Shown piece after piece: positions 28,962-63,473 of a DNA stretch of 64,000 bases. Within the stretch, counting starts at the first letter, position 1; each line of letters starts with the position of its first letter. The stretch spans positions 1,550,001 to 1,614,000 of the forward strand of contig JAYJKW010000399.1 in assembly GCA_035084275.1 (NCBI GenBank), written 5' to 3'. The position numbers and the translations under genes were made by a program. Below the pieces are notes generated by a model. That model made no database searches. It was not told where the DNA came from and was given only the letters and a program-made list of their open reading frames with translations. This DNA comes from Hydrolagus colliei. Its lineage: Eukaryota.

Positions 28962-29000
28962 CACAGTGTTATCTTCAGGTTACACTACCGCACATAAACC
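28962..29000 (+). other. 23-RSS of V3
   Basis: CACAGTG + 23-nt spacer + ACATAAACC (one mismatch to ACAAAAACC). Confidence 0.95.
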
Positions 29001-30919
29001 TAGAAAAAAGAGATGATGTGTTGAATCACAGCACAGCTGTCATTCCTGTCAGTTGACCTATTTCACTACTTGTAAATTTGCTGCTGTGTCTCCCACAGGA
29101 AACACTTGATTAATTCCCAACCACATATAGTAAAATACGTGGTTTCATGTAGGCAAAGAGTTAAATACACGATACTAAATAGAACAATTGTTATTATAAC
29201 AGGTGCTGTTTCTGGAAATAATTAATGCATGAGTCAACACTGGGGATCAATGAAGATCTCCGTACATATTAAAAATATTATTTTACAACGTAGTTATTAT
29301 GTTTAGAAATCTAAATAAAAGTGCTGAATACCATTGTGATGTAAGATGGAGAAGGTGTTTGAATTATTGCAAAGCATTAGTTGGAGTAACGTTATTGAAA
29401 CAAAAATGCTTTATCCACGTGTATACATACACCAACTAGCCCAGTGTTCAGGAATGGACTCCATTAGTGAAAATGAGCCTTTAAATCCACAACTGTTTTT
29501 TCAAACTTGCGAAACATAACGTTTTCTAACCATTTTACAAACATTGGCACTTAAATTTAATTTGTTGTTCAGCCGAATGCTAGACACAATTGTTAACCCA
29601 TCACAATGCTTAGGAATAACAACAACAACAGCAATAGGAGGATTACATTTGTATCTCGGATTTCGCATCAGGAGGACGTACCAAGGTGCTGGACGTTACC
29701 TGCTTCAGACCAGAGCTGACCACAACAACAATAAAATTAGACGTAGATAGCGCCTTTCACGTCTGTGGGACGTCCCACAGTGCTGAACAGTCCGATCGGG
29801 TGGACAGTCGGAGAAGGGTGAAGGGGAAGGAGAGTGGGAGAGAGAGAAGAGTTAGGGAAGCAGCCGAAGACTTGATCGAAGAGAAAGTTCTTGAGACGCA
29901 TTGATGGATGAAAGGGAGGAATCGAAGCAGAGGGGCTGCAGGATGCAGTTCCATAGTGTGAGGGCAGAGGGGTTGAAAACTCGTCTACCGATGGTTGGGC
30001 GGTGTTACAGGACAGACTACTGGGTGGGTTGGAGGGAGTGGGGAAGAATGATTTGCCGAAGGGTCCATCGATGAGCAGAGTCTTGAGTCGAGATTTGAAG
30101 GAAACCCAAACAAAGTTGGAATTCTCATTGCATCCGCCCAACCATGGAAACACTAAATAGATTGTTGGAACATATTGTACACTCTCTCGCTCGACTCCTT
30201 CTTCTCAGTTAATTCCAGAATTTACTACGTACATTTTGGCAACGCTAAGGGTTCGAGATATCCCAGATTGTATCTTTGGTTAACTTTGGTTGGAATCTAA
30301 TCCCCTAAAGCCATGTATTGTGCCATAGGTATCGCTCTCTTGCAATCTTTCCCACTGCTTGCCCGTCTAGGATGTGCAGCTAATTGGATACAGATCAATC
30401 CTCACAAGCGAGAGAATTGGGTTCGATTCTCAGCAGTGCGAAACGATGGGCAAGTTTCCTAAAACCGCATTGTTCTCTGCATTGAAGTAATTAACAATTT
30501 GGTTGTGAATTGAAGACAGTCTCCTTTTCCGCAAATAATAATATTTTTACAATAATACGAATAATCATTTGATCACTTAACCCGTGTATTTTTAGGGTGA
30601 CGCTGCTGAGTACCACGATTTTACAAAAGTATATTCTGAATTAGCATGACAGTATAATATATGTAGTGTTTTGAGATTTGTCTGGACGATGTGGTAAGGC
30701 GCTATAATTCAAGGAAGTGTTTTGTTCTATTATTCTGATAATGTTCACATGAGGGCTTTGATTCGCAAGGTTAACAAGTGATGAGTCAGAGTTATTCCTA
30801 TCCCAATTATCTGATGAGTAACGCAGTATGAAAGCAATCGGTTGCTATATTAGGAACACAGTTGAGATGACAGTGAGGTGAAGTGAGACTGTGGGCTCCG
30901 TCAATGGCGACAATTACTC

Positions 30920-30958: not shown

Positions 30959-32281
30959 ATGGGGCTGTTTTCTGTGTGTCTTGTGCTGGGAATATTTAAG
31001 TCAGGTGAGGTGGACTTGTGCTAATTCGGTGTTCCTGCTGAAGGTCACAGCATTTCAACACTTTTTTTGAACCAGACGTAATCATTCCATTTGATGTAGC
31101 GCTTTCCACTTTTTATACACGTCGAATAGCGCTTGATGGAATATACTGTACAGTGAATTGACTCTATATTTGTGAGTGAGCGAAACGCGGCAGCCAGTTG
31201 CATTTAAAATGCATCCTTCGCAAACATTTGTGGATTGAAATGACCATTTTTTTATTGTATGTTTTGGGATGGAATATTATTAAGCGTGTCGAATAAGGAA
31301 ACTTCGCCAAGGGTTCGCCCTGACCTACCAGGATTCGAGCATACGTCTCACGCTTGTAAGACGCGTGCTGGAAACACTGAGCTGCAGTGGGTAGACCTAT
31401 AGCTCAGTATTTACATCACTTGCTTCACATGCGAGAGGGCCTGGGTTCAGTAACCGGGAGGGTGAACGCTTTGGCAAGTTTCCCTTCTGCGCCTTATCAA
31501 GCATTTTCTATGCTTACTCGACTCACAAGCCTTTCTTTACTGTCAGCAAGTTCGAATCAGTATGATTCCCCATTCAATTGAAATGAGCGAATATAAATAC
31601 AACTAATAAAAATGTCTCCACTCAATAATATTAGCTTATAGGAGGGTGGATTGTTACGAGGATAATATTGCTTTGAGAATTTTCAATGTAAATTTGACAC
31701 ATGATTCCACGACTGTTTGTGAGAGACTGCTGTGTGCAATTGCCTGCACTCTTTCGCCCACAAGATGCAGGTTAAATCACTTTATAGCCTATCCAAATAT
31801 ATAAATGACCTATTAATGGTTTATATTGTATTAGTTGATTATTATGATTCCATTAACAAGAAACTACAGGGGCATAGATCCTTTCCCTTTTGGAAGGACG
31901 GCCCAAGGCGCTGAAACATGAATTCAGCCAAAGTGTGAATAACACTTTATCGTTTCTCTGTTGCAGACCAGTGTAGTGGGGACTCTGTCAGTCAGCCGGA
32001 TGTCACGATGGTTAAGACAGAAGTAGGAAATATGACTTTACAATGTACATGTACCACCACTGAAAGCGATTACGCCCTTTCCTGGTACCGATTTACCCCA
32101 GGGAAGCCGCTAGAGTTTATATTTCTGAAATATTCTTGGAGTGACAGTCAACGCAAAGGAAGAGGATTTGGAGATCGTTTCGACACTCAGCTGTGGAAAT
32201 TAAATTATTCTACCAGTTTGTCCATCACTGAGCTGCTGGTGTCTGACAGCGCTGTGTATCTCTGTGCCATTCGACCCTCAT
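30959..32281 (+). CDS. TCR delta/alpha-type V segment V4 (leader 30959-31004, V exon 31967-32281), apparently intact
   Basis: Leader MGLFSVCLVLGIFKS|GTGAG, acceptor TTGCAG. Then DQCSGDSVSQPDVTMVKTEVGNMTLQCTCTTTESDYALSWYRFTPGKPLEFIF...SLSITELLVSDSAVYLCAIRP. Both canonical Cys and the Trp are present, with no stops. Confidence 0.93.
31070..31800. mobile_element. Two Deu-SINEs inserted head-to-head in the V4 leader intron
   Basis: Minus copy about 31070-31385. Plus copy has its head at about 31390-31495 and a Deu box near 31710-31780. Confidence 0.75.
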
Positions 32282-32320
32282 CACAGTGATAGACACAGGC
32301 CACTGACGCAGACACTTCCT
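32282..32320 (+). other. 23-RSS of V4 with a divergent nonamer
   Basis: CACAGTG + 23 nt + ACACTTCCT. Confidence 0.85.
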
Positions 32321-35170: not shown

Positions 35171-36599
35171 ACGCAGAGATTTCTCTACAGTCTGAAGCAG
35201 ACAGGGAGGGAGAGGGTGTGAATGTGGCAGAGAGGGAGATATATATATACTTACATAGGCTTGTGAAAGAGATACATATCATGACATATACAGGAAGAGA
35301 GAGAGAGAGAGATCACACAGCAGCCTGAGATACACTCACACACACAAACACAGGGAGATACGTGCACAGGGGGAGAGTCATCCAAAGTCTTTGTCCAACT
35401 CTGTGAAACTGGGACACGCAAACACACCCGAGAGAGGGAGACACACAGGCAAATACCCTCGCAGCCTCACATAAAGAGAGAGACGCGTTCATAGGCCTTA
35501 AACACATTGGGAGAGTGATGTAAACATACAATGAGAGAGTGGGCGGGCGGGGGGTGGTAGTGGGCGTGAGCTTAGCAACACAAATATAGAGCGAGAGGGA
35601 GGACACGCATATATGTGGGCATCAAAAATCATAGACACAGACACTCAATGGGACATGCTCTCACATATCTCCTTCCCACCCCCCCTCCCCCCTACACACT
35701 CTCCCTCTCTCATGTACAACCCCCCACCTCACACACACATTCCTCCCTCACACACTCAAAACATGTTCATCTACACAATCCCCCCGGACACACAAGCCCT
35801 TACACACAACAACCCCCCCCACACAAAATTCCCCTCACACTCAAACCTTCCCTTACAGACAACACCTCTTTACACACACACCACCTCACACACGTAACGC
35901 CCCTCAAAAATTCACAAATACATACAAGCAGGAACTCTAGTCCGTCCCCGTCCACCCGCAAATCTACCTTCACGCGCACCTACCACTATGTCACATAAAC
36001 ATACTCATTACTCGCAAAACCCATACACACAATCCATGCACACCCATCCCATACAACGTCCACTCACACACTCCTACAACACTCATACAACCCGCAAACA
36101 GTCCCCACTCACTCCTCCCCACCTCACACATATGACCGCACATATCCGGGACAACACACAACACCAAATACAAACACAAGCCTAACACACACCCCGCTCT
36201 CACACATACCCCTCATGCATCCCCATCAGACTCCCCCTTAAACACACAACACTTCCCTCACATACGCAACCACACCTCACATAAACAGCACCGTCTCATG
36301 CACAACCCCCCACCTCACACACACATTCCTCCCTCACACACTCAAAACATGTTCATCTACACAATCCCCCGGACACACAAGCCCTTACACACAACAACCC
36401 CCCACACACAAAATTCCCCTCACACTCAAACCTTCCCTTACAGACAACACCTCTTTACACACACACCACCTCACACACGTAACGCCCCTCAAAAATTCAA
36501 TCTACTCTCACACATACAACCCTCTCACACACAAACCCCACGACCATTCCCAAAGCAACCACCCACCCACATCAATCAAACTCCTTGCAACCATACATA

Positions 36600-37290
36600 A
36601 AATATCCAAAAACTTGGATGACACTAAATTAGGAGAGAGAGTCAACAGGAGGGATAACATTTTAGTTCATGACAAAAGGGGCAGTATATACGGGTAGGGG
36701 AGTGTTGCTGCAGCTGTAAAGGGCTCTGATGAGGCAGCCTCTGGAATATTTTGACTAGTTTTGGTCTCCTTATTCAAGCAAATATGTACTCGCCTTGGAG
36801 TGCGTTCAACGTAGATTCACTAGGTTTCTATCTGGGATGAGGGGAATGAGATTCATGGATAGGTTGAGCAATCTAGGTCTATATTCTCCAGAAAGTAGAA
36901 GAATTAGATGTGCTCTTATAGAAAACTATCAGATTATTAAGGAGCAAGACAGAGTACACAGTGGAAGACTGTGTATTCTGGTTGGAGAAACTGTAACCAG
37001 GGGTCACAGTCTGAAAATTAGGGGTCAACCCTTTCGCACTGAGTGGAGAAAACATTTCTTCACTCAGGTTGTTGTAAATTTATGCAACTCTCTACCCCGA
37101 AGTGCTGCGGATGCTAATTTCTTGAACATATTCAAGACTGTGATTGATAGATTTCTTGTGGATCAAGGGATTAAGGGACATCGTGATAAGGCTGATAAGT
37201 GGAGCTAGAATAGTTCAGCAATGATCATATTGAAAGGTGGTGCAGACTCGAGAGCCTGAAAGGACTACTCCTGCTCCTATTGTTGATGTT
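36600..37290 (+). mobile_element. CR1 LINE 3' fragment
   Basis: ECVQRRFTRFLSGMRG...RGHSLKIRGQPFRTEWRKHFFTQ, followed by the CR1 3' end 'ctactcctgctcctatt'. Confidence 0.9.
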
Positions 37291-38329
37291 CATACACCCT
37301 CACCCCATCGCGTGCACATATATGCCCCCCTACCTACATACATTCTCTCCGTTTCTGTGTGCATCTCTCGTACACACTTAGTCTGCCTGTGTCTCTCACA
37401 CACTCACTGAGAGAAAGAGAGACAGAGAAGGACAAACACATACCCGCTGAGACACAGTGTGAAAAAGACAAATAGAGATTCGGAAACACACACACAACCA
37501 TTCTCTCTGACCACACAACTCTGTGTCTCCTGTCATCCAAAATGACACGCAAATGCAGATATAGACAGAACCACACAATTGACACTCAACCATATACACT
37601 GCCCTCTGTTTGTCTGAGGCTTACATGCACACTGAATTACACAGAGATAGAGAGACACGGAATGAGAGACATACACATCCACAGATAAACGTTGGAATCC
37701 CCTCTCTCTGCCTCAATGTGTCTCTGTATTACTGAGACAGTAATAACATACACACACACACAGAAACACTAACATCCTCTCTTTAGACTGAGCTACACCC
37801 ACTTAGAGACACTCACACAGACCTTTTTGTTTGTCTCTCTCGCATACAGGCCTCTGTCTCTGGAAATCAGAAATCACAGATGACATTGTGCATACACTCA
37901 TTCTCTCACACGTACATACAGCGAAACACTGTACGCCACTCTTTATGTTTTTCTGTGTCTAATAATAAACTTTGCAATTGGTATAGTGCCTCATTCCGTC
38001 TTTGAGGCATCACAAAATGCTTTACTGCATGATCAATAGATTAAGGTGATTATGTTTTGTGAGCAAAATATGGAATTCAATGTCTCTGTCTTTGTGGTGT
38101 GTGAGAGTCAACGTACGTGTGTGTGTGTACATCAGACTGTGTGTATGTGATCATGTGCATGTGAGTGTGAGTGTATGTGAGAGTGTGTGAATGTTAGTGT
38201 GCCTATATGGGTGTGTGTATGTGTTGATTGCAATTAGCGAGTGAGAGGGCCTGGTCTGGATTCCTCGATGGGTTAGGATGAAATGTTGGGTAATTTTCCT
38301 GAATTCACACAAGGTTTTGTTTACCACCA

Positions 38330-38600
38330 GCACTAATACTAATAATCCTTGCTTTTGATATCGTGCTTTATCATGTGTTCTGTACATCCCAACTATCTTC
38401 ACGGATTATACAGTGAAGTGAAGTGAATGTATGTTTGTAGTAGAATCTCGGAAGTCAATTGCAGGAGAGTGTCCCACAAACAGTCGTGGATTGAAGTGAC
38501 CGATTTTGTTTTCGGGATTATTATCAGGCCTGTGTGTGGAGTAAGGAAACTTGTACAAGGTTTCGACCTCAGCTGGCAGACTCCAGTAGGTCGAAAAATG
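38330..38600 (-). mobile_element. Deu-domain SINE, partial
   Basis: Reverse-oriented Deu core, 'aaggaaacttg' and tail. Confidence 0.75.
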
Positions 38601-39754
38601 CTTGTTGGGCGAATAGTAATCGCTCTTCCTGGGTAACAATCCCTCAATCATAATACTAATAATGTTCTCACTCAATCCAGTACTGTTCATTTGATGTTGC
38701 TCTGCACAACTCAATGCTATGTTTCACCTACAAAACACAGTTACTACGCTTTAAAATATATCTTGTAAACGAAAATCTATGAGGCACCCAGAAGACGTGA
38801 TGATGCACAGTGTCCATGTCAGGCAATATTATTATCCGAAAAACATGGGGAGGGTGGAACTAACTACAGTGTGTCTGTTTGTGTGTGTGTGAATGTGTAC
38901 AAGAGAGTATCTGTGAATTCTGGTGATTAGAAATTGAGGGCTGTATGTGTGAGAGATGGAGAGACACAGACACAGAGGCCTGTGAGTATGTGGGTGTGGG
39001 TGTCTCACTCATTTTCTGTTTGAGTGTACCTCAGGCTGTAAGCAAGACAATCGTTTCAGTCTCGTTATGTTCATGACCCTCGGTAACATTAGTAGACTCA
39101 ATGGGATATCATGAGAAACAAATACTTCCTATGATCTACTCATACAGAGAAACACATTTGACTACCTGTCTCTGTGGCACACAAACAATAAAAACATTAG
39201 GTTTTTTAATCGCCTTTCATGTCGGGAGGACGTCCCAAGGCGCTGATACACAAACACACCTACACACACACACTCTGTCTCTCTGTATCTGGCACACAAC
39301 ATACCCCACCCATGTACACAAATACAAACAAATCCACTGTAAATTCATACACTTCCAGGGCAATCAATCAGCCCCAACAGCCCTCACACACACACCTCCC
39401 ACACGCATACAATGAATACCACCCCCCAACACCCCAACACCCACCTTCGAACCCAAACAAATTCACAGGGAGAGACACACACAGACAATGAAAACATTAT
39501 ATCTCTCCCTGTGTCTATTATTCGTACCCACCGCCACACAGCTCCAACTCATAAACATACACACAGACCCCCCCCCCCCCCCCCCCACACACACAGCCCA
39601 CCCTCACTCTGCAACCCATCACAACATACACACAGCACCGCCAATCTCCCCCCCCCCCCACTCACACACACACAGTGTCTCCCTGAAACTTTGCAGTGAC
39701 CAACTATTAAGTATCAAATTCCACTCTCTCTCTCTGCAGAGACTCAGAATCGCT

Positions 39755-39945
39755 CTCTCTGTCGCCGCCATGTTTGTAGTTGATTTTGTCTCGAGCCTCG
39801 CCATCAACGATAAACGCGCCTGACGTCATGACGATGTACGCCGGGCGGCTCATTGCGACGGCCCCGCCCACTGACTCCCTGGTAACCAGTGATTAGCAGG
39901 AGTGTGGCACACCCTCACTCTGTCTCCGGTAACCAGTGATTGGAA
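39755..39945 (-). promoter_or_regulatory. Promoter-like cassette copy 2
   Basis: GGTAACCAGTGATT(A/G)G occurs twice (about 39881 and 39928), TGACGTCA at 39821-39828. The minus strand reads AAACATGGCGGCGACAGAG (ATG at 39771-39769). Confidence 0.6.
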
Positions 39946-41014
39946 GGAGAGTGGGACACGCCCACAGTTATTATTATGTTAGTTACTGACAAATCTCTGG
40001 GTGGGGGGTATCAACTATTGCATTATTGACATTAATATGTTTATTTTGTTTGTATTATTGTTGTCATAATAATAAATTCGTCATTTTAATCCATGGTTGT
40101 TCCGTCATTCCAGTTCACAAATGGATGGAACATCTCACCCACAGCTACACATTAAATTTCATTATGCTGGCTATTCCGTGAAGCGCTTTTAGACGTCTAG
40201 AAGGCGTGAAACGCACTAACTTAGTGGGACACTCACTTTCAGAGGGAGACACACGTGACCCTGCGTCTGATTCCCTTTTATACAAACACACATCGATTGT
40301 GGTCATGAGGAATCACAGAGATTAACTGGAGGGCATACACATATACACTCAGCTCCCTATTCTCAGCTCACACATAGCCACTCACAACAAACAAACACCC
40401 AGACCCCTCACACACAAACAAACTCACACCCAGCCCTCACTCTCGCAAAAATTCACACACAGCGTCCTCACGCACACAAAAACATGCAGAATCCCTCACA
40501 CACACAAACACACTTACAAACCGCTGCCACATACAAACTCACACATAGCCGCCTCACACACTTGCACAGTCCACCTGCACACGCGGATCCTCGACGTGCA
40601 CAGAGCCACCTCACAAAGACAAAACCAGCTGTACACACAAACACAACACTCACACGCAACGCACTCTCACACAAACACGTACACACAGCCACTTCTCACA
40701 CACACATACTTACAGTCCCCTCTCACACACAGTAAAACATCCACACGGCCCCATCACATACAAACAAATGGACACACAAACCCCTGACACAAAGATTACC
40801 CCACACCCGTTGCACACATAGCTCCCAACGGCACATACACACACATAGAGCCCTCCCACACACAACCCACCCGCAGACACCCACCACACAACACCTCACA
40901 CACACACACACACACACAAAACCCATCACACGCAGTACACCCCATTCTCCATCATACACAGACACACACACATGTCTCTATCTACCAGTGTGACTCTCTC
41001 TCTCTTCTGAGTCT

Positions 41015-41200
41015 CGGTCTGTCGCCGACATTGCTGATGATGCTGCTTTTGTCTCTTGAGCCGCCGCCGCCAACGGGCAATACGCAAGTGACGTCATGAC
41101 GGTATACGCCGCAAGGCTGTGTGGGAGTGACCGGCCCTCTGATTCCCTGGTAACCAGTGATTGGCAGGAGTGTGGGACACGCCCACTCTGTCCTGGTCAA
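41015..41200 (-). promoter_or_regulatory. Promoter-like cassette copy 3 (tandem duplicate of copy 2, about 1.26 kb apart)
   Basis: CCCTGGTAACCAGTGATTGG at 41144-41163 plus a decayed second unit, TGACGTCA at 41088-41095. The minus strand reads CAATGTCGGCGACAGAC. Confidence 0.6.
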
Positions 41201-43835
41201 CAGTGATTGACATGTGGAGAAACCACTCCGCTCCACACATACAGCCGCCTGTCTCCCCAGCCCGAACATCACCACCACCACACACACATTCCTCTAACAT
41301 ACACAGTGCCCTCACACACGTACTAATCACAGCCCCCCTCACGCAAACAAATGTACACGTAATCAATTCACATACACAACGTCCCACAAAAACAGAGCCG
41401 CCTCTATCAAATATACACAGATGCCAGAACCCCACACCCCCAATCACAGTACCCCCAAACCCAGTCCCACAAAAATGTACACAAAGAGCCACACCATACA
41501 CATAGCTCCCCCATCCCCAGGTAAACACAACCTCCCCTCTCTCTCTCTCACACACACACATAAAGTTCCTCTCCCCCACATACAGCGCAACACTCAAACA
41601 CACAGCCCACTTATACACACATATTCTGCATTTCTGTTTTTTTTGTACTGTTGCAGGGAAATCTGTGAACCCTTTCTGTAGGAGGTTTGTGTCGTTTGTG
41701 CTGTATATCCGGTGACGATGCTCAGCTAAATCTATACGAGTGGTTTAGCTACACATCTCTCAGTCCTACAGAGGTGAAAGTAGCTCTACAAATTCAATTT
41801 TTTTTTAATGTTCAAAATTATCCCTTTCAAACGACGAGAATTGAGCTCGTGTGAACTGTAATTCAAAATGAAACTCCCTTCTCCTTTTACCGAAAGCTTT
41901 GTAGGATCTTAAACATCTGATCTGAACAATGCACAAACTGGATCCCAATCTTACCATCTCACGAGACGGTCAGAGAAGGAAACCAACAGAAACACCGACA
42001 GGGATAAAGAGAGACTGAGACTGATTCAAAAAAATAGAATAATAATTCGGTTATTTCAATCCATGACTGCTTCTGAGCATTGCATTTCACCCACAAATCT
42101 ACAATTATTTCATGTTACAATGTATTCAGTGAAGTGCGTTGAGATACATAAAACGCGTGATAAGGCGCTATATCAAAAAGAAAGATTACTAGTATTAAAT
42201 ATTGAGGCTCGATTAGTGTCCAGAGAACTGTAACTTTAAATGTTTTCGCACCCTTTGCAGGTTTGTGCTTCATATCCGGTAACGCTGCTCAGCTAAACCC
42301 ACAACAGTGGTTCAGCTAAACATCAGCCTTTGCAATGATGTACAATGTTCAAAAATAGCCCTTTCAGACAGCTTGCAATGTGCTGGTATGGATTCTAAAA
42401 CATGCAGAAACTCACTTGCCTTTTAGCAAAAAGCTTTGTAGCATCGACAACATCTTCGACATGAAATAAATTGGAACTCAAATTTATCATCTGGCATGAC
42501 AGTCCCATAGCAGCAGACGGATAGGGAGAGACAGTGAGATAGAGAGTGACTGCTTGTGTGAAGGATAGTGCGTGTGACACAGAGAGCGATAGAGACTGGG
42601 AGTTTCAGAGACCCAGAGTCAATAAGTGACTAACTAGGATTGTGAGACGATCAGTAGTAGACTGAAAGATTGAGAGTTTGAGAGAAGCAGTGTGTGAGAG
42701 AAAGCCTGATAGTTAAGTAGTGAATCGTAGTGTGAAAGACACGATATGTGTATGCATATGTATTTGCGTTTGTGTGTGAGTGAGAGAGAGAGAGAGATGC
42801 AGAGAGAGTGAACAAACGAGGGTATTCAAACAGAGACAGAAACAGACAAATAATTGGGTTTCCTTTTTTATATTGAGCAGCCTTTGCAGAGTTGTGCAAT
42901 TTAATGCTCTGATGAAGTGTCGCAACAACTGTGAATATATCTATTTAAAGTTGAACGACAGAGATCCGATTTCACAGCTCAGCCCATTTGCGTCACCCAT
43001 TCTTCCTCTTTCAGCTTCTCACAGTTTAGTCTGTTGATAGGTTTTAATTTTTGTCTTTTTAGTTAACTTCCACCAAATGAACTGAAAACTCTAATGATGA
43101 GGTTTCTGGCGAGTATTAGCCTAAGTGTCAGAGTGAGGATTTAATCTCAGATTTAGCATTATTTGAAAAAAATCTCCTTGTTTGGTATCTCGTCTGTTTA
43201 TTTTGTCAATTAACTTCAAACACTTTTTCCGTTCCACTCTTGCTAAACCGTTAGAATTTTAAATAAATCTAACTTCTCCCTACGCATTGTCTGTTCGGAG
43301 AAAGTACCAGTTTCTATAGTTTCAATATTAAATTGTGTTTCATCATCCCTGTCATAATCCGGGTACATCTCCTCTGCACCATCTCCAATGCCTTGAAATC
43401 ACTCATAGAGTTGGTGAAACTACTAATAGTTAACGCACTCAAGCCACACAGCTTGTCCTGTGCGGACACTGTTGACCTGCCATTTTTTGTCCAGTTCAGA
43501 GCATCCATCCCTCCGTTCAGGCCTCAGAGAGTTTGCAGAAACTGCAGATTCTCAGTGGGTGTGGATGTGTGTGACAGTTGTTCCAGGAAAAGAGAACATG
43601 ACCAGTTCTGCTATTCTGTAGTCAGCATAGAGAGATACTGAGTCTCAACATTTTTCTGTGGCACACGGAAGTGTGTGTTTCATGATCACAGAGATCAGTC
43701 AGATCGGGTGGTCGAGTTAGGATCAGCTCCTCAGATCTTCTCCGTATGGTTTCGCCCCAAAGACGTGGATTTCCACAGGGATACAGCAACTATCTTCCAC
43801 TGTCTGCTCCTCACCAGCTCTTGCATGTACTCAAG

Positions 43836-43860
43836 ATGAAACTGATAATCTTCTTCTTCG
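43836..43860 (+). CDS. Candidate alternative leader exon S1a of the SRCR-Ig receptor (MKLIIFFF)
   Basis: ATG AAA CTG ATA ATC TTC TTC TTC G|GTGAGT is phase 1 with a consensus donor. Joining it to the 36-nt exon gives MKLIIFFF-V-IFLDRISVEPA. Confidence 0.5.
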
Positions 43861-45009: not shown

Positions 45010-45040
45010 ATGGCCGTTCAGACATTGTGCGCGTTTTTAT
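45010..45040 (+). CDS. Candidate leader exon S1b of the SRCR-Ig receptor (MAVQTLCAFL)
   Basis: 31 nt, phase 1, donor T|GTATGT. Joining it to the 36-nt exon gives MAVQTLCAFL-L-IFLDRISVEPA. Confidence 0.6.
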
Positions 45041-45384: not shown

Positions 45385-45420
45385 TGATATTTCTGGATAG
45401 AATCTCGGTGGAACCAGCAG
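45385..45420 (+). CDS. 36-nt signal-peptide mini-exon S2
   Basis: Pyrimidine tract ttttgttgttgttcag| then TGATATTTCTGGATAGAATCTCGGTGGAACCAGCAG|gtaagc. Exactly 36 nt, open in phase 1-1, and in frame with SRCR1. Confidence 0.8.
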
Positions 45421-47924: not shown

Positions 47925-49150
47925 TATATAAAAACACAATAGTTAGGAGCAGGTGTAGGCGATTTGGCCACTCGAACCTGCCGCGGCTTTTGATAAGATC
48001 ATGGCTGATCTTCTGACCCATTTCTAATTACCTGCCCTATCCCATATATTCGAATCGTTCTATTTAAAAAAATTAACAATCTCAGCTTTGAAAATGTTCA
48101 ATTACTGAGCATCTACAGTCTTCTTGGGGTAGTGAATTCCATAAATTCACTACTCTCTGAGTGAAGAAGTGTTTCCTCAATACCGTTCTAAAAGATTGAC
48201 CCCTTAATTATAAGATGATTACCCACTAATTGTACTTCTGCTACCAGTGAGACAGTTCCTCACTGTCTACATTATCCAGCCCATTAAGAAACTTATATGT
48301 TTCAATAAGGTCTCCCCTAATGCTTCTGTACTCCAGAGAATACAGCCCTACGTTATTCAACCTATACTCATAGGTCAGTCTCCTCATCCCAGGAACCAAC
48401 CTCGTGAATCTACGCTGCACCCCATCTAAGGCAATTATGTCCTTTATTAAACAAGGAGACCAAAACTGCACACAGAACTCGGTCTCGCCAAGGCCCTTTT
48501 CACTTGCGACAAGACGTCCATACTCTTGTACTCTAAACCTTTTGCAATGAACGCTAACATGCCGATTACCTTCTGATTTGCTTCCTGCTCCAGCAAACTA
48601 ACATTTTTAGGCTGGTGTACAAGGAAAACCAAATCCCTTTGTGCACTAACATGACCTAAACCCTTCTCGCCTAGACTATATATATATTGCTATCTAGGTG
48701 AATAATGTCATACTTCCCTACCTTAAATTCCTTCTGCCACCTACTCGCCCACTCCCCTAGCCTAACTATATCCCTTTGCAATCTTTTGGCATCATCCGTA
48801 CAGCTGACTCCCCTACCTAGTTTACTGACATTCGGAAAATTAGACAAGAGAGTTCAATATCCTCGTCTGGATCATTGATGTAAATTGTAAATAGCTGACG
48901 CCCAAGCACTCATCCTTGTGGCACTCCATTAGTTGCATCCTGCCAATTCTACAATGATCTGTTTATCCCTGCTCTCTGTATTCTACCCGTTAGCCTCTCT
49001 TCGACCCATACTAATATGTTCGCATTAATCACATGGGCATTGACTTTGTGCAATAGCCTTTTGTGTGGCAATTTATCAAATGCTTCCCTAAATTCTAACT
49101 ATAGCACATCTAGTGGTTCCCCCAATTCAACATACTAGATATGTCCTCAA
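47925..49150 (-). mobile_element. CR1 LINE fragment
   Basis: Minus ORFs read QFWSPCLIKDIIALDGVQRRFTRLVPGM and IGMLAFIAKGLEYKS. The CR1 3' end is at the left. Confidence 0.92.
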
Positions 49151-49865
49151 CAAAACTCCAGAAGAATAGCTAATGATTAGTTTTGTCTTACACAACATTA
49201 CTGCTTCATAAAACTATATTCAACATACGTTTCAATATCAAATTCAATTGTCTTTTTAAGTTTGTAACCTATCCTCTTGCTTCAGGATTCAATGGGATGA
49301 GCAGGTGTAAGAATAGCAGCAGTAGTACATAGTGTTAGTTAACCAAGAGGTGAGGTGGTGGGGTGTCGAGCTTTAGAGCAGGAGGCTTATTGCACGGTCG
49401 TTGAGTTTCCCATTTGTAACTTGCTCACAGTGATCCTCAGCTCACACCACCCCCCACACACCTGCACCTATGACACTTACCCCTAGCTCACACTGACCAA
49501 GAACTCACACCGAAATATACCTTGCAGTATAATAATATAACATGCAATAATATCTAATAGTACAGAAGTGATTTTTTTCATTATATATTGATCTTTGTCT
49601 TTGCAAGTCTAGTGGCAGTCGACACAGCTAGCAATGTGATTACAATGGAACAAACGTTCATTGTCATTTTGATACAAAATTTGGGATTGTATGTCACCAC
49701 CAGCCACAGCCGACATTATAGTTACTTTTATTGTTGGTTTTATTGTTGTTGTTTTCCTTACCCTCTAGGCACCCTCGTAACGCGACAGATACCCTCCCGT
49801 ATGCATTGCGTAAATAGAAGTCAATCAGGAACCAAACTCTAACTAATGGATGGGCTATTTTACAG

Positions 49866-50189
49866 GAAATGTGAGGCTGCAGAATGGCAACAGTCAGTGT
49901 GCCGGGAGAGTGGAGCTTTACCACGATGGACAATGGGGCACAGTGAATGGCTATGGCTCCAGCGTTTATGGCTGGGATAATTTGGACGCTGCTGTGGTGT
50001 GTAAGGAGCTGGGCTGTGGAGCGGCGCTATCAGCACCAAAAGCATCTCACTTTGGGGAAGGCTCAGGTCCCATTGTGACGTATTATGTTCAATGCAGAGG
50101 CAGTGAGTCTGCTTTGAGTGAATGTCACTCAGAGCCCTGGGGTCACTATAGAAATACACACGACGATGATGCTGGCGTCATTTGCTCAG
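49866..50189 (+). CDS. SRCR domain exon 1 of the SRCR-Ig receptor
   Basis: TACAG|GA...TCAG|GTAAGT, 324 nt. GNVRLQNGNSQCAGRVELYHDGQWGTV...AAVVCKELGCG...HFGEGSGPI...VQCRGSESALSEC...DAGVICS. Confidence 0.96.
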
Positions 50190-51374
50190 GTAAGTACGTA
50201 TTTCTCTGATAACCATTTCGGTCTCACGGAAGAGGTTGTTTCGAAGATTGAAACATGTGGAGAGGAATTGATAACATGTGAGTTGAACAAAGTGATGGGT
50301 GAGCACATGTACGTAAACACATTGGGGTATTAGTACAAGGATGGGTGAGAATGGCGGTGAGAACATTGTGGTTAACAAAGGGTGCAGTGAACACTGGTCG
50401 AGTGAGTTTGGCGGAAGGGAAGATGAAAACAGTGGGTTTACGCACCACTGGGTTGGGGGAGGACACCAAGAACAACAAAATTGCAATTATAAAGCGCCTT
50501 TCATGTAGGGAAGAAGTCCCAAAACGCTGAACTGTCAGGTCGAGACACGAGCGGGGGCGCGGGGTATGTGTGTGGGGGGGAGGGGATTTCAGCAAAGGAG
50601 GCAGCACTTGTGTGCGTACCACAAGAGTCAATACAGGGACGTGAGAAAATAAAAGGTGACAATATCGGTGGCTTACGGTACGGGAAAGTTGAGTACACGC
50701 GGTGGTAGTGGGTAATCAGAGTGCGAGATGCAGCACAATCGGGGTTGAGAATATTGGAGGTGAGAACACGGCTGGGAAAACACAATACAGAGGAGATTGA
50801 GCATGGGGAAGGCAGGGATTTGAGTACAAATCGTGTTTGAGCACAGAGGAGTGAACCCAGAGGTATGTGTGTGTATGCGGGAGTGTATACAGCTGGAGAA
50901 CGCAGGAGGGCGTTTGGATATGGACAAGTGCGGTGACGCAGTTAAACATACGTTGGGGTGTCAAATCAGTGTGAGTGGAACCAGGAATCTTGAGCATATG
51001 GAAGTGCAAAGTCGGGTGAGTGATCGCATTGGGGTATCAAAGAGTGACCATAATGGGGATTATAAAAAGGTTGGGAGATGGGCCTAGCAGATGGGGTGAG
51101 CAGACGGAAGGAGCAGCGATGAATAGTTGAGCACACGAGCACAACTCGAGGTGGGGAGTAGGAGTGACTGTTGGGGGCAGGCATGAACACGGGTGTTCAT
51201 TGTAAATCAGGAGGGAGCATGACGGCAGGGTGGATGGAGTTGGGGGGACCTGGGTTGGGGGTGGAATCACAGGAGGGTAAACGATGCTGTAACAAAGTGT
51301 GGAAGCGCATTATGATTGGTGCGCGATTGGGTTGAGCACAATGTGCTCTTGTAAAGTACATCCTTGTAAAGTGG

Positions 51375-53330: not shown

Positions 53331-53810
53331 ACAAATTGAGAGGACATTGTTTGTGACATTCATGATATTTGAAAGAGAGGTAGATATTTATTTGCGAGGT
53401 TATGCGGAGAGAGCTGGCGAGTGGGATTAAATTTCTGGTTTTAAAGAGATGGGCCTAATGTTCTCCTTTTGTGCCGGAAATTTCTATTATTCGATTATTA
53501 CATGATGCCGAGCTCCCCAGTCCACGAACTCACTTTGAAACTTAACTCCCGCTGCCCACTAGTTCAAATTGACTCCCAGCTCATATTGACCCTACTCCAG
53601 CTAACTCCGACTCGCAGAGGGGGCAGCACATGTTTTGACATGCTAAAGACACTTATTAATATCAGTACACTTAACTGCATCGTATCAAACCTCAGACGTA
53701 TTGAATCTTAGAGAATGACGCTGGACTGAAGGTCGTTCCTGATGTTCACTGTCACAGAACAGATCAGAGTCAGTATTTGCGAGATTATCCTTATTGTGTT
53801 TCAATTACAG

Positions 53811-54095
53811 ATTCAGTCCAGAAACCTACTATTTCCGTGAATTCAGATTATCGGGTGTTTGAGAGAGAGGACAAACGTGAGATCTCGTGTTCTGGAAATT
53901 ATCCTAGAAGCAAATTCTCTTTATACAGAGATGGCAATTTTATCACAACACAGCAAGCTCTAGGGATAAGCAACACGGTCACGTTCATCCCATCGGAGAT
54001 CATTGCAGGAAATTACTGGTGTAGCTATACTACACGAGTAGACAGCAAGGAGGCCACATCACCAGAGAGCGAACCAGTGCGACTGTATTTTCGTG
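53811..54095 (+). CDS. Ig C2-type exon 1 (FcR/LRC-like)
   Basis: TTACAG|AT...CGTG|GTAAG, 285 nt. DSVQKPTISV...EISCSGNYPRSKFSLYRDG...AGNYWCSY...SPESEPVRLYFRG. Confidence 0.94.
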
Positions 54096-54559
54096 GTAAG
54101 CGCAATATGTTTGAAATTGACCTATATGTTCGTTAACCAGTTGCAATCTCACAATAAGTAATTAATAGGGATCGAAAATAATGGAACGTAAATTATACTA
54201 TGATAAACGTTAACAATCGAACACGACGTATAACGATATAAAATCTATTAATATGCAATATAGTAATAAACTTGTTATACTAAATTTTGCATTCAATATT
54301 GGATAATTTTGTTGCACGCATAGCTGGAATGGATAAAGATAGTAATGGTAAAAAAATAGAATAAACGATTCATTGTTATTTTGAAAAAAAAGGATTGTAT
54401 TTCACCACCTGTCACTGCAAATATCATAGTTATTTGTATTGTTGTAGTATTGTTTACCGTCGAATCACGATCGCAATTTTACAGGTACCTGTCACGCACA
54501 TTGGGTGACTAGAAGTGAAAAGCAACTGAACTCATAATATTGAGTATTATATTATACAG

Positions 54560-54868
54560 GCAATGCAAAGCTCGTGAATGGCGGTAGCCCGTGTTCCGGG
54601 AGAGTGGAGCTTAAACAACATGGACAATGGAGGAAAATATCTGGCTTTGGTTGGAATATGAAGGCCGCAGCTGTGGTCTGTAAGGAGCTGGGCTGTGGTC
54701 ATGCGCTCTCAGCACCAGCAATCACTCACTTTGGGGAAAGCTCAGGTCGCAATGTGACTCACGATGTTCAGTGCACAGGGAGTGAGTCTACCCTGAGGGA
54801 ATGTCACTCGCATCCCTCGAGTAACCATTCAACGCCTCACGACAATGTTGCGGGCGTCATCTGCTCAG
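54560..54868 (+). CDS. SRCR domain exon 2
   Basis: ATACAG|GC...TCAG|GTAAAT, 309 nt. GNAKLVNGGSPCSGRVELKQHGQW...AAVVCKELGCG...HFGESSG...VQCTGSESTLREC...AGVICS. Confidence 0.96.
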
Positions 54869-57291
54869 GTAAATACTTCTATCTCTGATCGCCAACGGAG
54901 TACCGGGCAGGCAGTGAGAGCATAGTTGGTGGGCAGTTTGTAAATTCGGAGGGTAATTTAGGAAGGGTGAGCTGAGCAAAGTGGTGGGTGAGCATGGCGA
55001 CGCAAGGGGTTTTTCACCATCAGGAGTGTGGTGTGCACGTTGGTGGGATCAGTGGGGGAGTGAGCAAAAGGCACTTGTTGGATACAGAAGCGTTTGGTGG
55101 TGCAAACTCGCAGTTAGGAGAGAGGTTTTGCATAGGGGGCAGCATAGCAATGTGGAGCACAAGGGGCGACACAGTGACGTGAGAAACAAAATGATGATCA
55201 TAACATGGCTTATGGTACAGGAGAGTTGAACTCGCAACAACAACAAAATTATATTGATAGTGCGCGTTTCACGTTGTGTGTCCCAAGGCGCTGAACAATC
55301 AGCTCAGGAAGCAAGAGATGGGGGTGGGGATGGGGAGTGGGGGGGGGGTGATTCGATGTAGTGGGAAGGAGAGTAGGAGAGTGGGAAATGTTAGTAGGTG
55401 TGCCAATGTCGCGGTCGAAGATAAAGGTTTTGAGACCGGACTTGAAGGAGGGGAAGGAGGAGGTGAGGCGAAGGGATTGCTGGATGTAGTTCCAGAGTGT
55501 GAGCACGGATGCTGAAAGCCCGGCCACCGATGGATTGGCGTTAGGGCGGTGGACGCAGAACAGGCCAGAGTATGTTGAGTTGAGGTATCGGGCAGGCTGA
55601 TGGGGAGACAGTAGGCAGTTGTGGGTGAACACAGCGATAGATGAAGCAGAATCGATCGTGATAAAATGTGAGGTGAGTATACGACTGGGAAAAAAAAACA
55701 GTTTGGGAGTATAGAGAGGATTGAATCTATTTGGTCGGTGTGGTGGGTGTAATGTCAGAGCTCAGAGGGCGTTATCACAAGTTTTTGAAGATGTGAGGAG
55801 CACAATGGGAGCCATTAACGGATTCGTTGAGGTCACGGTTGGAGCACAGATGGAGATTTGAGCACAGGAGTGATCAGCAAAAGCAGGGAGTGAACTCAGG
55901 TGGGAATGTGCAATTCTAACTGGGGTAAGAGTGTTTCCATAGGTAGCGGGGATCAGCAATGGGGTTTGGTGAAACACACGAGTGTGAACCAAGAGGGTGG
56001 TTGTAACAGGGTGTGTAAGCATATTATAGCGTGCGGAGATTCGGTTGAGCACAGGGTGCTCCTGTCTATTACGCATACCCACTGTGCTAATCCGTTATTC
56101 TCACAGCGCGTCCACTCCAATGTGTTATTGCCTCCTGTGTGCATTTCAGCTGCGATTCACACCCACTGCATTCACCTGCCACATACTCACCCACACGCGT
56201 GTAAGATCTCAAAGACACTCTATGGATGGAATTTGGATGTTGGTCTTGTTGCTGTATGTAGCCCCAACTTTGCTCACGCTGTCGTGATCATCAACCAATG
56301 TGCTCGAATACCTCCCCTCTCCCCTCTCCCCCGCCTCCCCCCACCGTGCTCAACCCACTGTGTTGACTCACAGTGCTCTACCCTCCCTCAACCATGTTCT
56401 CTCATCATATTCTCTGATCACTTCGGAGTAGGATGGGGGGGATGGAGGGTGGAATCAAGCGAGGATGAGCAAAAGGGAGGGAAACAAACGTGGGCAGAAC
56501 TGAAATGAGTTCAATACATGCACAACGGGCCTGTGCTCATTGGCAAAGCATAGGTGGATGAGCACATGGCGGAGCAAAGTTTGCAGGCGCACATCGAGGT
56601 TAGCAAGTCGTGGCAACATAGGCAGGTGTGGGTTCATGGAGGGGTGCCATTTGGGACGGAACACAGTGAGTGTGAGCAAAGTGCGATGAGCACAGGTATC
56701 TTATCACCAAAATGTGCTATGCACACGGGAAGTGCTGTGAACACTGGAGTTGGGGCCGGGTGGATGCTGAGCAAAGGTAGCCGTGCTCGGTGTACATTGC
56801 AGTGGGTTAAGGCGAGCATGTTCGTGGCGCTGATAACATCGTAGATGTACGGGGGTGTGGACACGGGCCTTATTGAAAATACGGATTGAATACGGGTTGG
56901 AGACGACCGGGTGAACATGTGCTCATAATAGAAAAGGTTTTGCAACGGGGCGTTTCAGCAAGGGTTGATCGAGGAACAATAAATTAGGCATTTAGCGCAG
57001 GCGACTGATAACAGGGACAGTTTTTTACACTGACCCCCATTACACACTATCCGCTCCTCACTCGGAATCCTAGCTCACACTGACGCCCAGAAAAATGTTT
57101 GAATGCAGCAGAAAAACTGTCCATTCAAGACCCGGATTAATAATATTTTACATTTCCATCTTGTATTAATCCTCGGGAGGCATCAATTCTATGGGCTGTC
57201 ACTGGACTCATTGGCGATCCCGATGCACATTGGCACAGCGAAGGTGAAAGGAAGTGTTGGGGAGATTATCTTTGTTGTGTTTTGATTACAG

Positions 57292-57576
57292 ATTGGGTCC
57301 AGAAACCCAACATTTCCATGAAGCCAGATTCTCAGGTGTTTGTGAGAGGAGAGGTTGCTGAGATCTCATGTTCTGGAAATTTTCCTGGCAGCACATTCTC
57401 TTTATCCAGAGACGGCGAGTTTATCACATCACAAAAAGCTTCAGAGAATAACAACATTGCCACGTTCAACCAAACGGAGATCAGAGCAGGAAAGTACTGG
57501 TGTAAATATATTGCACGCGTAGGCAGCAGAGAGATCACATCACCAGAGAGCGAGCGAGTGCGAATCTATGTTTATG
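57292..57576 (+). CDS. Ig C2-type exon 2
   Basis: TTACAG|AT...TATG|GTAAG, 285 nt. DWVQKPNIS...EISCSGNFPGSTFSLSRDG...AGKYWCKY...SPESERVRIYVYG. Confidence 0.94.
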
Positions 57577-58081
57577 GTAAGAGAAATATCCCTCACAGTA
57601 TCATGTTTGTCGGTTCACCAGTTCAAGCCTCACAATATGCCATCGATTATCACCTCGTTAATACATCTCAGAATGCGGAGACGCAACATACTATCATTGT
57701 GGAGTCCTATACCTCAATGAATAGAGCACTCGTCTTTCTCCTCAAGCCCAATAATAATCTCTAAAGGAAAATATATTAAATTGATCATTTAATTTCACGA
57801 ATGTTTATGGGAAACTGTTCTACACAAATGGTTGCCGAATTTCGTCACACATATATATAGTCAAATCATTTTACATTATACGCATTGAATCTCGTTGAGA
57901 CGTCTAGAAGACAAGTAAAAATGGTTAGATCAAACGGAAGGATTATTATTAACATTACTAACTGTTTAATTTGTGGTGGAAATACGAATCGAATAACAAT
58001 CGTGTCCCTACTTTTTGTGAAATCAGCAGAGGTGCACGTGGGTGAGGGAACTTGCCAAAGTTTCTTCCTACCCGGGAATTT

Positions 58082-60214: not shown

Positions 60215-60499
60215 ATCCGATGCAAAAACCCACCATTTCCATGAACCAGGCCACTGGTGTATTTTTGGCAGTGGAAAGTGCTGAGATCACGTGTTCTGGG
60301 AATTATCCTGGTAGCATTTTCTCATTATACAGAGGTAGAAACATGACCGCATCAAAAACAGCAAAACATGGTCATTCCACAGCAACATTTGTCGAAACGC
60401 AGATAACGAAAGGCAGTTACAGATGTGAATATACAAAGCAATTATACGATCGACTGCTAAGGTCACCAAGGAGTGATGTAGTGAAAATCTACGTTAGAG
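60215..60499 (+). CDS. Ig C2-type exon 3
   Basis: TTCCAG|AT...AGAG|GTAAG, 285 nt. DPMQKPTISM...EITCSGNYPGSIFSLYRG...GSYRCEY...SPRSDVVKIYVRG. Confidence 0.94.
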
Positions 60500-61135
60500 G
60501 TAAGAACGAGAGCATGAGCGTTTGCACGTCCGTTTGCAAATCTAATTGTCTTTTATCAGTTGCAGAGAAACAATAATAAGGCTTCTATCGGATACTACAA
60601 ACTTGAGACAATTTAAATGTAGATCCTCACAATTCGATTCAAATCCACTCAATCCATGGCACCTCTCTCCCTTTCCACATTTAGCCCCCTTTCCCTTACC
60701 CAATCCAATATCTGATGCATCCGATAGACTGCCACATTTATCCTTCACATATGTGACTATTTTCCCCATAGGTGGATGTCGTGCATTAAGTCAATACGCC
60801 CCCAAACTGTGGATCTCTCCCTCAATCCCACTGTCTACCCCAACACCGCACTCTCCCCATTTTCATGTCCTTTCTGAAAATATTATCATTCAACCAGCAA
60901 ATAAGGCCTCCTGTCCCCACTCCCTCCCCACTCCAACCCCCCACCGCCCCCACCCCACTCCCTGCCCCACTACCATCTCGGAGAGAATATTGATAAGAGC
61001 TGCCGAGACGTGGCAATAAATCTAAGACAAAGATAATCTCGAAGACAGTGACTGGGCTCTTGTTGAGACTCATACTCGTTAGCACAGATCAGAGCGTGTG
61101 TTTGTAAGGTCATCTTCATCTTGTTTTAACTTCAG

Positions 61136-61441
61136 ATCCACCCCAGAAACCCAGCATTTCCCTGAGGCCGGAATACCGGAATTTTGTGGAAGGGGAAAGT
61201 GTTGAGATCTCGTGTTCTGGGAACTATTCTGGGAGCAAATTCTCTTTATACAGAGAAGTGGAGACGATCATATCAACCATATCTACAGCATATAGTTATG
61301 CAGCAACACAGTCTATTTACAGGGCAAGATTTACTCCATTCAAGATCATTAAGGGGAGATACTGGTGTACATACACTAAACAAATCTACGGACGAGAGCT
61401 CAGGTCACCAGCGAGCGAGCGATTGAGAATCATTGTGAGCG
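61136..61441 (+). CDS. Ig C2-type exon 4
   Basis: CTTCAG|AT...AGCG|GTAAG, 306 nt. DPPQKPSISLRPEY...EISCSGNYSGSKFSLYRE...GRYWCTY...SPASERLRIIVSG. Confidence 0.94.
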
Positions 61442-63167: not shown

Positions 63168-63473
63168 ATCCGCCGCAGAAACCCATCATTTCCTTGAAAC
63201 CACAATACCGGAATTTTGTGGAAGGGGAAATTGCTGAGATATCATGTTCTGGGAATTATTACGGCAGCAAATTCTCTTTATACAGAGAAAACGAGATGAT
63301 AGCAACCACATCATCTGCACGATATAGTTATGTGGCAGCACCATTGCTTTACACAGCAACATTTACTCCATTTAAGATCATGACGGGAATTTACTGGTGT
63401 ATATACACTAAACAAACATACAGTCGAGAGCTCAAGTCGCCAGTGAGCGAGCGAGTGAGAATCTTCGTGAGAG
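63168..63473 (+). CDS. Ig C2-type exon 5 (tandem duplicate of exon 4); the gene continues beyond the window
   Basis: TTTCAG|AT...AGAG|GTAAG, 306 nt. DPPQKPIISLKPQY...EISCSGNYYGSKFSLYRE...GIYWCIY...SPVSERVRIFVRG. Confidence 0.94.

Follow-up and report, generated by a model that had tools for sequence, protein, structure and literature searches.

A 36-nucleotide leader mini-exon in an SRCR-Ig mosaic receptor gene of Hydrolagus colliei and its cartilaginous-fish relatives

Our analysis of a 64,000-nucleotide (nt) stretch of Hydrolagus colliei DNA (assembly GCA_035084275.1, contig JAYJKW010000399.1, positions 1,550,001 to 1,614,000; hereafter the window) centers on a receptor gene that combines scavenger receptor cysteine-rich (SRCR) and immunoglobulin-like (Ig) domains and whose leader is split between a first coding exon, S1, and a 36-nt second exon, S2. 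Comparative data confirm that S2 is a real second leader exon, with splicing of the copy in the window being predicted. We are fairly confident that the gene belongs to a large receptor family of cartilaginous fish, made up of SRCR/Ig mosaics and Ig-only members, in which S2 is genuine and the Ig domains are of the type found in the superfamily of leukocyte receptor complex (LRC) and Fc receptor (FcR) genes.

A 36-nt second leader exon

S2 (TGATATTTCTGGATAGAATCTCGGTGGAACCAGCAG) is open over its 36 nt. Read as 2+33+1 nt, it enters and leaves in phase 1 and encodes x-IFLDRISVEPA-x, which corresponds to the last part of the hydrophobic core and the c-region of a signal peptide. A pyrimidine-rich tract ending in cag forms the acceptor (preceding sequence ...ctaactttttgttgttgttcag), and the donor is CAG|GTAAGC. 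The last G of S2 and the GA that opens the first SRCR exon (SRCR1, at 49866, after ttttacag) together make a glycine codon, in frame with NVRLQNG...C. A sequence-only reading of the window had proposed a 36-nt exon with a strong acceptor and a GTAAG donor, in frame with SRCR1, and had remarked that it was missing from the list of open reading frames (ORFs). The splice sites, the phase and conserved copies bear out the first statement, and the second is correct as well, S2 being too short for that list.

An initial ‘strict’ splice filter, which threw out even the real S2, was dropped and its thresholds were loosened. Under the resulting moderate filter (pyrimidine tract ≥0.7, YAG acceptor, donor match ≥7/9), which was set post hoc, after the exon had been seen, S2 is the sole open phase-1/1 candidate of 15-90 nt in the 6-kilobase (kb) interval between S1 and SRCR1. 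It is also the sole 36-nt candidate on both strands of the whole window, and shuffled sequence yields 0.007 candidates per S1-SRCR1 interval. By bare AG/GT and open-frame rules, this interval holds 182 candidates of 15-90 nt and 7 with a length of 36 nt, so the S2 motif alone is not decisive.

These bare-rule counts are what one would expect if S2 were no exon but an open stretch that happens to lie between AG and GT in a long intron. Two negative results also weigh on that side: the protein collection contains no product of the window gene, its best match being 61% identical, and there is no transcript for the copy in the window. However, S2 is unique under the moderate filter, it recurs with identical length and phase at four paralog copies with an identity far above that of the flanks, and it is built into the RefSeq models of paralogs. 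Given the comparative data, we consider a chance stretch very unlikely and accept S2 as a real exon because it is conserved across paralog loci.

S2 in chimaera and shark relatives

In a protein search at word-index sensitivity, relatives of the Ig part were found solely in Callorhinchus milii, which is also the source of the closest relatives and of the shared repeats examined. The fetched C. milii loci contain four S2 copies, each exactly 36 nt and bounded by AG and GT (Table 1). Over the exon, the five copies are 84% identical, versus 43-44% in the adjacent 36-nt flanks. An SRCR exon lies 4.4 kb downstream of S2 in the window and 1-3 kb downstream in locus L001 and at both L002 copies; downstream of the minus-strand copy in L003, there is no SRCR exon within the fetched sequence. 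This orphan copy (L003 6037-6072) sits just downstream of, and on the opposite strand to, the last Ig exon of C. milii P0123 (L003 1498-5227, plus strand), a model in which SRCR-Ig-Ig is joined to PRY/SPRY (B30.2); this layout is butyrophilin-like or else reflects a fusion of gene models.

The S2 peptide can be followed through the C. milii proteins. Mapping P0125 to its locus places VIFLEGKTGECA on a separate 36-nt exon (cag|...|gtgagt), and the N-terminus of this protein reads MKTFVVLLL-V-IFLEGKTGECA-E.... Those of P0050 and P0096 read MESLFIIF-V-IFLERKPVETA-V... and, via an alternative first exon, MSQENIKCEQLKRG-M-IFLERKPVETA..., and the peptide is also found in P0199, P0310, P0372, P0371 and P0176. 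In the P0050, P0096 and P0371 isoforms, different first exons are joined to the S2 peptide via an xTG codon (V/M/V); a junction residue that changes between V and M while the rest stays constant is the expected pattern if the exon boundary divides an xTG codon. The P0176 isoform skips in frame from S2 to a later SRCR exon, and in P0308/P0313 a homologous leader (MKPLFLFLLL-T-TLLETRTVGTA-A) stands directly before the Ig domain. S2 therefore appears to be a common adapter for either domain type.

The same exon length is seen in sharks. The bamboo-shark gene P0042 (L006), which encodes 13 SRCR domains and one Ig domain, has a 36-nt S2 that opens TA-TTT-CTG-G and encodes x-FLAIQQTLLSQ-x, and an Ig-only ‘IGSF1-like’ gene of the horn shark (P0267, L004) has one of different sequence, x-HLHLLVGQGTN-x. 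Every one of the seven chondrichthyan S2 copies examined (the window, four C. milii copies, bamboo shark and horn shark) is 36 nt long, a length that would have been inherited across Chondrichthyes. The leader of a teleost SRCRx9-Igx2-transmembrane gene (Gambusia P0120, L005) is also split, with an S2 of 27 nt and an S1 of 37 nt. The expectation that paralogs would share a 36-nt exon thus holds within Chondrichthyes, in C. milii and the two sharks, but not outside, where the length varies.

S1 and the split signal peptide

To find S1, upstream ATG...GT phase-1 candidates were screened and then aligned to paralog first exons. The candidate at 43836-43860 can be aligned, together with about 150 nt upstream of it, to C. 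milii paralog S1 exons (MESLFLIF+G, MEPLFLIF+A and MKTFVVLLL+G). Another candidate, at 45010-45040 (MAVQTLCAFL+T, donor gtatgt), sits in the S1-S2 intron, shows no alignment with paralog S1 and was rejected. Since the former alone matches the S1 exons of paralogs, 5' flanks included, it is most likely the partner of S2. Splicing the two exons gives GTG, a valine, at the junction, and the predicted N-terminus is MKLIIFFF-V-IFLDRISVEPA-G-NVRL (MKLIIFFFVIFLDRISVEPAGNVRLQ...).

From this arrangement, we infer a cleavage site, an adapter role for S2 and the effects of skipping it. S1 would supply the methionine, a basic residue (Lys) and most of the hydrophobic core; S2 would supply the final core residues, IFL, and a polar c-region, DRISVEPA, that ends at or beside the signal-peptidase site. 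Cleavage would occur at or near ...EPA|G, in which case the mature chain starts at about the first codon of the next exon. The glutamate at -3 of the presumed site (VEPA|G) is unusual and counts against it; glutamate at this position recurs in paralogs (ETA, ECA, ESA).

With S2 and all domain exons in phase 1-1, S2 would be a fixed adapter, after which an SRCR or Ig exon could follow, duplicate or be skipped with the frame kept. Skipping of S2 itself would preserve the frame, but the leader would be truncated and probably non-functional. In FCAR, the predicted signal peptide needs both S1 and S2, and variants without S2 exist (PMC5351921). By likeness to FCAR, skipping of S2 would be expected to cripple export.

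A family of SRCR/Ig mosaics and Ig-only receptors

An Ig profile was built from 14 Ig exons of the window and the C. milii loci and searched in a library of 1.84 billion proteins, which gave 747 representatives at E ≤ 0.001. Among the best 147 of these 747, most are Ig-only (108), 29 are SRCR-first plus Ig and 10 are otherwise mixed, and those with SRCR domains include interleaved SRCR/Ig patterns such as SISIISISIIIIII. Named members come from sharks, rays, sawfish, chimaera, teleosts, bowfin, coelacanth and reptiles. The family's proteins are already in public databases under automatic names from the NCBI and UniProt pipelines, including IGSF1(-like), A1BG-like, FCRL5, DMBT1-like, M130-like, TARM1 and OSCAR. 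No published account of a chondrichthyan LRC or SRCR-Ig family was found in the searchable literature library.

SRCR-Ig mosaics occur widely among both cartilaginous and ray-finned fish, so the fusion is ancient and not specific to the window gene. The predicted mosaics of elasmobranchs and ray-finned fish share the Ig profile and mosaic architectures with this gene, and the S2 of the bamboo-shark gene is homologous. They differ in the leader exon lengths of the Gambusia gene and in the SRCR domains of elasmobranchs and teleosts, which keep eight cysteines.

Each SRCR domain of the window gene is encoded by a single phase-1 exon, as in the group B SRCR proteins (CD163, CD163L1, WC1, SCART, DMBT1 and SSC5D). 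Sequence similarity to this group is strong, and many relatives are automatically named DMBT1-like or M130-like. Unlike in group B proteins, Ig-like domains make up most of the ectodomain, and there are paralogs with tails of the immunoreceptor tyrosine-based inhibitory motif (ITIM) type. Both SRCR domains also have six cysteines rather than the eight of group B, as do the aligned C. milii paralog domains; the pair that is absent from the window and C. milii domains aligns with WGT(V/I)C and NNC of the bamboo-shark and Gambusia domains. This pair differs from the one missing in group A SRCR domains. Judged by these alignments, the six-cysteine SRCR is an unusual variant of the single-exon (group-B-like) domains.

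The sequence-only reading had proposed that an Ig gene gained SRCR exons by phase-1 exon shuffling. The phase 1-1 exons and modular duplications described below agree with shuffling, but the gain may have run either way, as the bamboo-shark gene combines 13 SRCR domains and a lone C-terminal Ig with a homologous 36-nt S2. That gene would be accounted for if the S1+S2 leader were of group B SRCR ancestry (DMBT1/CD163-like) and the Ig exons were acquired, which would make the 36-nt match to the LRC a coincidence. The SRCR-only shark proteins P0079 and P0387, which have a similar N-terminal layout, would fit too, as would the split leader with a 27-nt mini-exon in the teleost SRCR-first gene and the SRCR-first share of the best family representatives (29/147). 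However, the Ig-only horn-shark gene has a 36-nt S2, the homologous S2 peptide of C. milii P0308 is joined straight onto Ig, and Ig-only members dominate (108/147). On balance, an SRCR origin of the leader seems improbable to us.

LRC or FcR affiliation

Profile searches and domain trees support membership of the Ig domains in the LRC/FcR superfamily. Searched against the PDB, the family profile ranks PirB, LILRB2, LILRB1, NKp46, FceRIa and OSCAR at the top, and the first non-member is CSF1R at E = 0.02. FCRL5 is not among the top 60 PDB matches of this profile. P0012 gives a similar order, with PirB, LILRB2, KIR3DL1 and OSCAR ranking top. Single-domain profile scores are alike for the two branches (24.4 bits for NKp46 and 23.6 bits for domain D1 of FceRIa).

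The domain tree comprises 75 domains, with LILRB1/2, PirB and three human FCRL5 domains from the PDB as references; a caveat is that its reference sampling is thin and that it has no outgroup. All five window Ig domains fall in a chimaera clade with 98/97 support. A split (ultrafast bootstrap 87, Shimodaira-Hasegawa-like approximate likelihood ratio test (SH-aLRT) 81) separates this clade, along with LILR and PirB, from the FCRL5 domains of human and anole, turtle domains and some shark domains, and the window domains stand apart from the three human FCRL5 reference domains in the best tree. In a quick tree, teleost SRCR-Ig and stingray domains join the chimaera clade with an SH-aLRT value of 86, for which the cut-off is 95. 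Since the Ig domains lie inside LRC plus FcR, the firm grouping outside both clades that the sequence-only reading had named as evidence against itself is not observed. Within the superfamily, the domains lean weakly toward the LRC.

Gene structure provides a second line of comparison. KIR, LILR and FCAR genes split the leader with a second exon of 36 base pairs (bp), and the first leader exon of KIR and LILR genes has about 34 coding nt. The 36-nt phase-1 S2 of the window gene matches the former value, whereas its S1, at 25 nt, differs from the latter. Other features are also shared with LRC receptors (LILR/PIR, KIR, FCAR, OSCAR, NKp46, GPVI, TARM1 and the derived IGSF1/A1BG), namely one Ig-like domain per phase-1 exon, a multigene family with rapid tandem duplication, and paralogs in both activating-type and inhibitory-type forms. 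Specifically, P0125 has NVAR (NxxR) in its transmembrane segment, and P0050 has the ITIM-like motifs VTYATV and IIYANL; the transmembrane segment and tail of the window gene lie beyond the window. NxxR has been described for LRC-related activating receptors (PMC6557307). Unlike LRC receptors, the window gene has SRCR domains first and interleaved with Ig, its Ig domains all belong to one lineage-specific clade without D1/D2-type subtypes, and its neighbors are V segments with recombination signal sequences (RSSs) and seven-transmembrane (7TM) receptor genes.

Several results weigh against an LRC leaning. With Ig2-5 of the window gene as the query, FCRL5 is the first PDB match at 60.9 bits, a score summed over its nine-domain chain, followed by PirB (46.5) and LILRB2 (40.2). 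Forcing the chimaera clade onto the FCRL side of the tree costs 3.1 log-likelihood units (approximately unbiased (AU) test, p = 0.375). The length of S1 varies (16, 25, 28 and 31 nt in cartilaginous fish, 37 nt in the teleost), and the teleost S2 departs from 36 nt. No LRC framework genes lie within the window, a weak point given that it spans 64 kb only. Finally, a search of the available literature library for the 36-bp rule of KIR, LILR and FCAR found no paper stating it; what was found are the FCAR requirement for S1 and S2 and a 30/21-bp rule for FCRL leader exons (PMC2413239). The window gene, with 25/36 nt, does not follow the FCRL rule.

One could go further than a leaning and regard the family as a cartilaginous-fish LRC lineage proper, sister to tetrapod LILR/KIR/OSCAR, in which the 36-nt S2 is a shared derived character and the SRCR exons are a later insertion separating S2 from the first Ig exon. 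This would account for the constant S2 length in every chondrichthyan copy examined, the NxxR motif of P0125, the lead of PirB, LILRB, KIR3DL1, NKp46 and OSCAR in the profile and P0012 searches, the 87/81 placement on the LILR/PirB side, and the relatives automatically named IGSF1-like, A1BG-like and OSCAR. It is less easily reconciled with an FCRL-side placement that passes the AU test, with FCRL5 as the top match of Ig2-5, or with the horn-shark gene, which has a 36-nt S2 but two domains that the tree places with FCRL5. Moreover, 36 nt could be ancestral for LRC plus FcR and would then be uninformative, S1 is off the KIR/LILR length, and LRC synteny is absent from the window. We regard an LRC lineage proper as doubtful.

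Alternatively, the family may be FCRL-related, or a stem that predates the LRC/FcR split, with an S2 length so labile (36, 27, 21) that it says little on affiliation. The FcR-like family (FCRL1-6, classical FcR and FCRLS) shares with the window gene and its paralogs a split leader with a mini-exon, multi-Ig ectodomains and signaling of the ITIM or immunoreceptor tyrosine-based activation motif type. The SRCR domain of FCRLS is C-terminal, whereas those of the window gene are N-terminal and interleaved. Mouse FCRLS, an Ig plus SRCR mosaic within the FcR-like family, is a precedent for such a combination, although it is described as soluble (PMC2413239, PMC4016189) and the paralogs here are membrane-bound. 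The Ig2-5 search, the AU test, the 27-nt S2 of the teleost, the near-equal FceRIa D1 and NKp46 scores and the relatives automatically named FCRL5 point the same way. On the other hand, S2 is 36 nt and not 21 nt in seven of seven chondrichthyan copies examined, PirB and LILRB lead a profile search in which FCRL5 is outside the top 60 PDB matches, and the tree leans LRC-ward. An FCRL or stem affiliation therefore also strikes us as rather unlikely.

Taken together, these observations uphold part of the proposal that this is an LRC-related gene. The PDB ranking, the paralogs with NxxR and ITIM-like motifs and the 87/81 placement agree with it, whereas the AU result, the FCRL5 match of Ig2-5 and the gene neighborhood leave it short of established.

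Implications for the origin of paired receptors

The SRCR receptors WC1 and SCART act as coreceptors on gamma-delta T cells. The SRCR-first mosaic recalls these proteins, and the adjoining V segments raise questions of ligand recognition.

FcR-like and LRC-type (C2-only) receptors have been stated to be absent from sharks and elephant shark and to have arisen in bony fish (PMC4016189; repeated in 2026, PMC13337447). We tentatively suggest that the genes described here may form an undescribed paired-receptor family of cartilaginous fish (NxxR/ITIM), the chondrichthyan counterpart or stem of LRC/FcR, that became SRCR-fused in the jawed-vertebrate ancestor. If true, this would overturn the first appearance of LRC/FcR-like genes in bony fish.

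The sequence-only reading had raised the possibility of an LRC-type lineage in cartilaginous fish. What can be retained is that cartilaginous fish carry an expanded family with LRC/FcR-type Ig domains, a split leader with a conserved mini-exon, and activating- and inhibitory-type variants of the transmembrane segment and tail; LRC proper is only a leaning, given the AU result. We consider the mini-exon a sound gene-structure character of moderate phylogenetic weight. Common to both chondrichthyan subclasses, chimaeras and sharks, it is independent of the noisy Ig-domain phylogeny and offers a handle on the origin of paired receptors. If the family instead turns out to be no more than a distant Ig relative whose leader length matches by coincidence, what remains is a correct exon annotation.

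Gene model and internal duplications

The exons of the window gene are ordered S1, S2, SRCR, Ig, SRCR, Ig, Ig, Ig, Ig, and the gene continues beyond the 3' edge of the window (Table 1). The nine-exon spliced model has 720 open codons and canonical AG/GT junctions, and every exon after S1 is phase 1-1.

Table 1. Exons of the SRCR-Ig gene in the window and S2 copies in C. milii loci
Feature	Position	Strand	Length (nt)	Phase	Details
S1, first coding exon	43836..43860	+	25		ATG; MKLIIFFF+G; donor G|gtgagt; aligns with paralog S1
S2, leader mini-exon	45385..45420	+	36	1/1	x-IFLDRISVEPA-x; unique candidate; 84%-identical paralog exons
SRCR1	49866..50189	+	324	1-1	Pfam SRCR, E = 2e-27; splice sites
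Ig1	53811..54095	+	285	1-1	Weak Pfam Ig_2/Ig_3 matches; splice sites; aligned to family Ig
SRCR2	54560..54868	+	309	1-1	Pfam SRCR, E = 6e-27; duplicate of SRCR1 block
Ig2	57292..57576	+	285	1-1	Pfam; splice sites; family alignment; duplication
Ig3	60215..60499	+	285	1-1	Pfam; splice sites; family alignment
Ig4	61136..61441	+	306	1-1	Splice sites; family alignment; duplicated as Ig5
Ig5	63168..63473	+	306	1-1	Splice sites; alignment; duplication; transmembrane and tail exons beyond window
C. milii S2 copy	L001 21584	+	36		Fuzzy search
C. milii S2 copy	L002 50014	+	36		Fuzzy search
C. milii S2 copy	L002 22581	-	36		Fuzzy search
C. milii S2 copy	L003 6072	-	36		Fuzzy search

The window gene gives direct evidence of modular phase-1 exon duplication. 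SRCR1 and about 290 nt of its upstream intron have been copied as SRCR2, with 70.5% identity over 641 nt (49574-50210 versus 54285-54889), and Ig1 has been copied as Ig2 at 75% (53721-54156 versus 57202-57637). A 1-kb block with Ig4 has been copied as Ig5 at 87% identity (60975-61971 versus 63004-64000). The duplications are nested and tandem, the copy of the SRCR-intron-Ig unit (70-75%) being the older.

A division into two separate genes, S1-S2-SRCR1-Ig1 and SRCR2 onward, was rejected because the gap between Ig1 and SRCR2 is just 465 nt and there is no second S2 within the window.

Genomic neighborhood

Four V-set exons, germline and ending in YYC or YLC, lie upstream of the SRCR-Ig gene (28615-29016, 32008-32289, 24066-24350 and 20832-21026). 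Downstream of each of the first two come CACAGTG, a 23-nt spacer and a nonamer-like motif, which is ACATAAACC for the first exon and weaker for the second. With these 23-spacer RSSs, the two exons are V gene segments of a rearranging locus, T cell receptor-like by sequence pattern. No heptamer follows the copy at 24066, and the stretch at 20832-21026 is fragmentary. The distance from the last V segment downstream to the start of the SRCR-Ig gene is about 11.5 kb.

An ORF at 8505-9431 encodes a rhodopsin-type 7TM receptor (Pfam 7tm_1, E = 1e-16), for which a PDB search gave no match at 1e-5. A second 7TM copy, possibly a pseudogene, spreads over two frames at 16912-17783. Homologues are found beside SRCR-Ig paralogs in C. 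milii at L003 31265-32176 (minus strand) and L002 72565-73391, with 77% and 42-60% amino acid identity, which suggests that 7TM and SRCR-Ig genes travel together.

The V segments are separated from the receptor gene by a long, strongly strand-skewed, CA/TG-rich low-complexity tract at about 35300-41700, with GC skew to -0.38, whose ORFs read as HTHT.../PPPH... repeats. Two adjacent ORFs at 21070-22503 (144 and 319 amino acids) have the look of a reverse transcriptase of the long interspersed nuclear element (LINE) type by eye and suggest a retrotransposon insertion beside the V-like fragment. Shorter LINE-like-looking fragments, also recognized by eye, are located at 13033-13377, 36795-37208 and 48241-48471.

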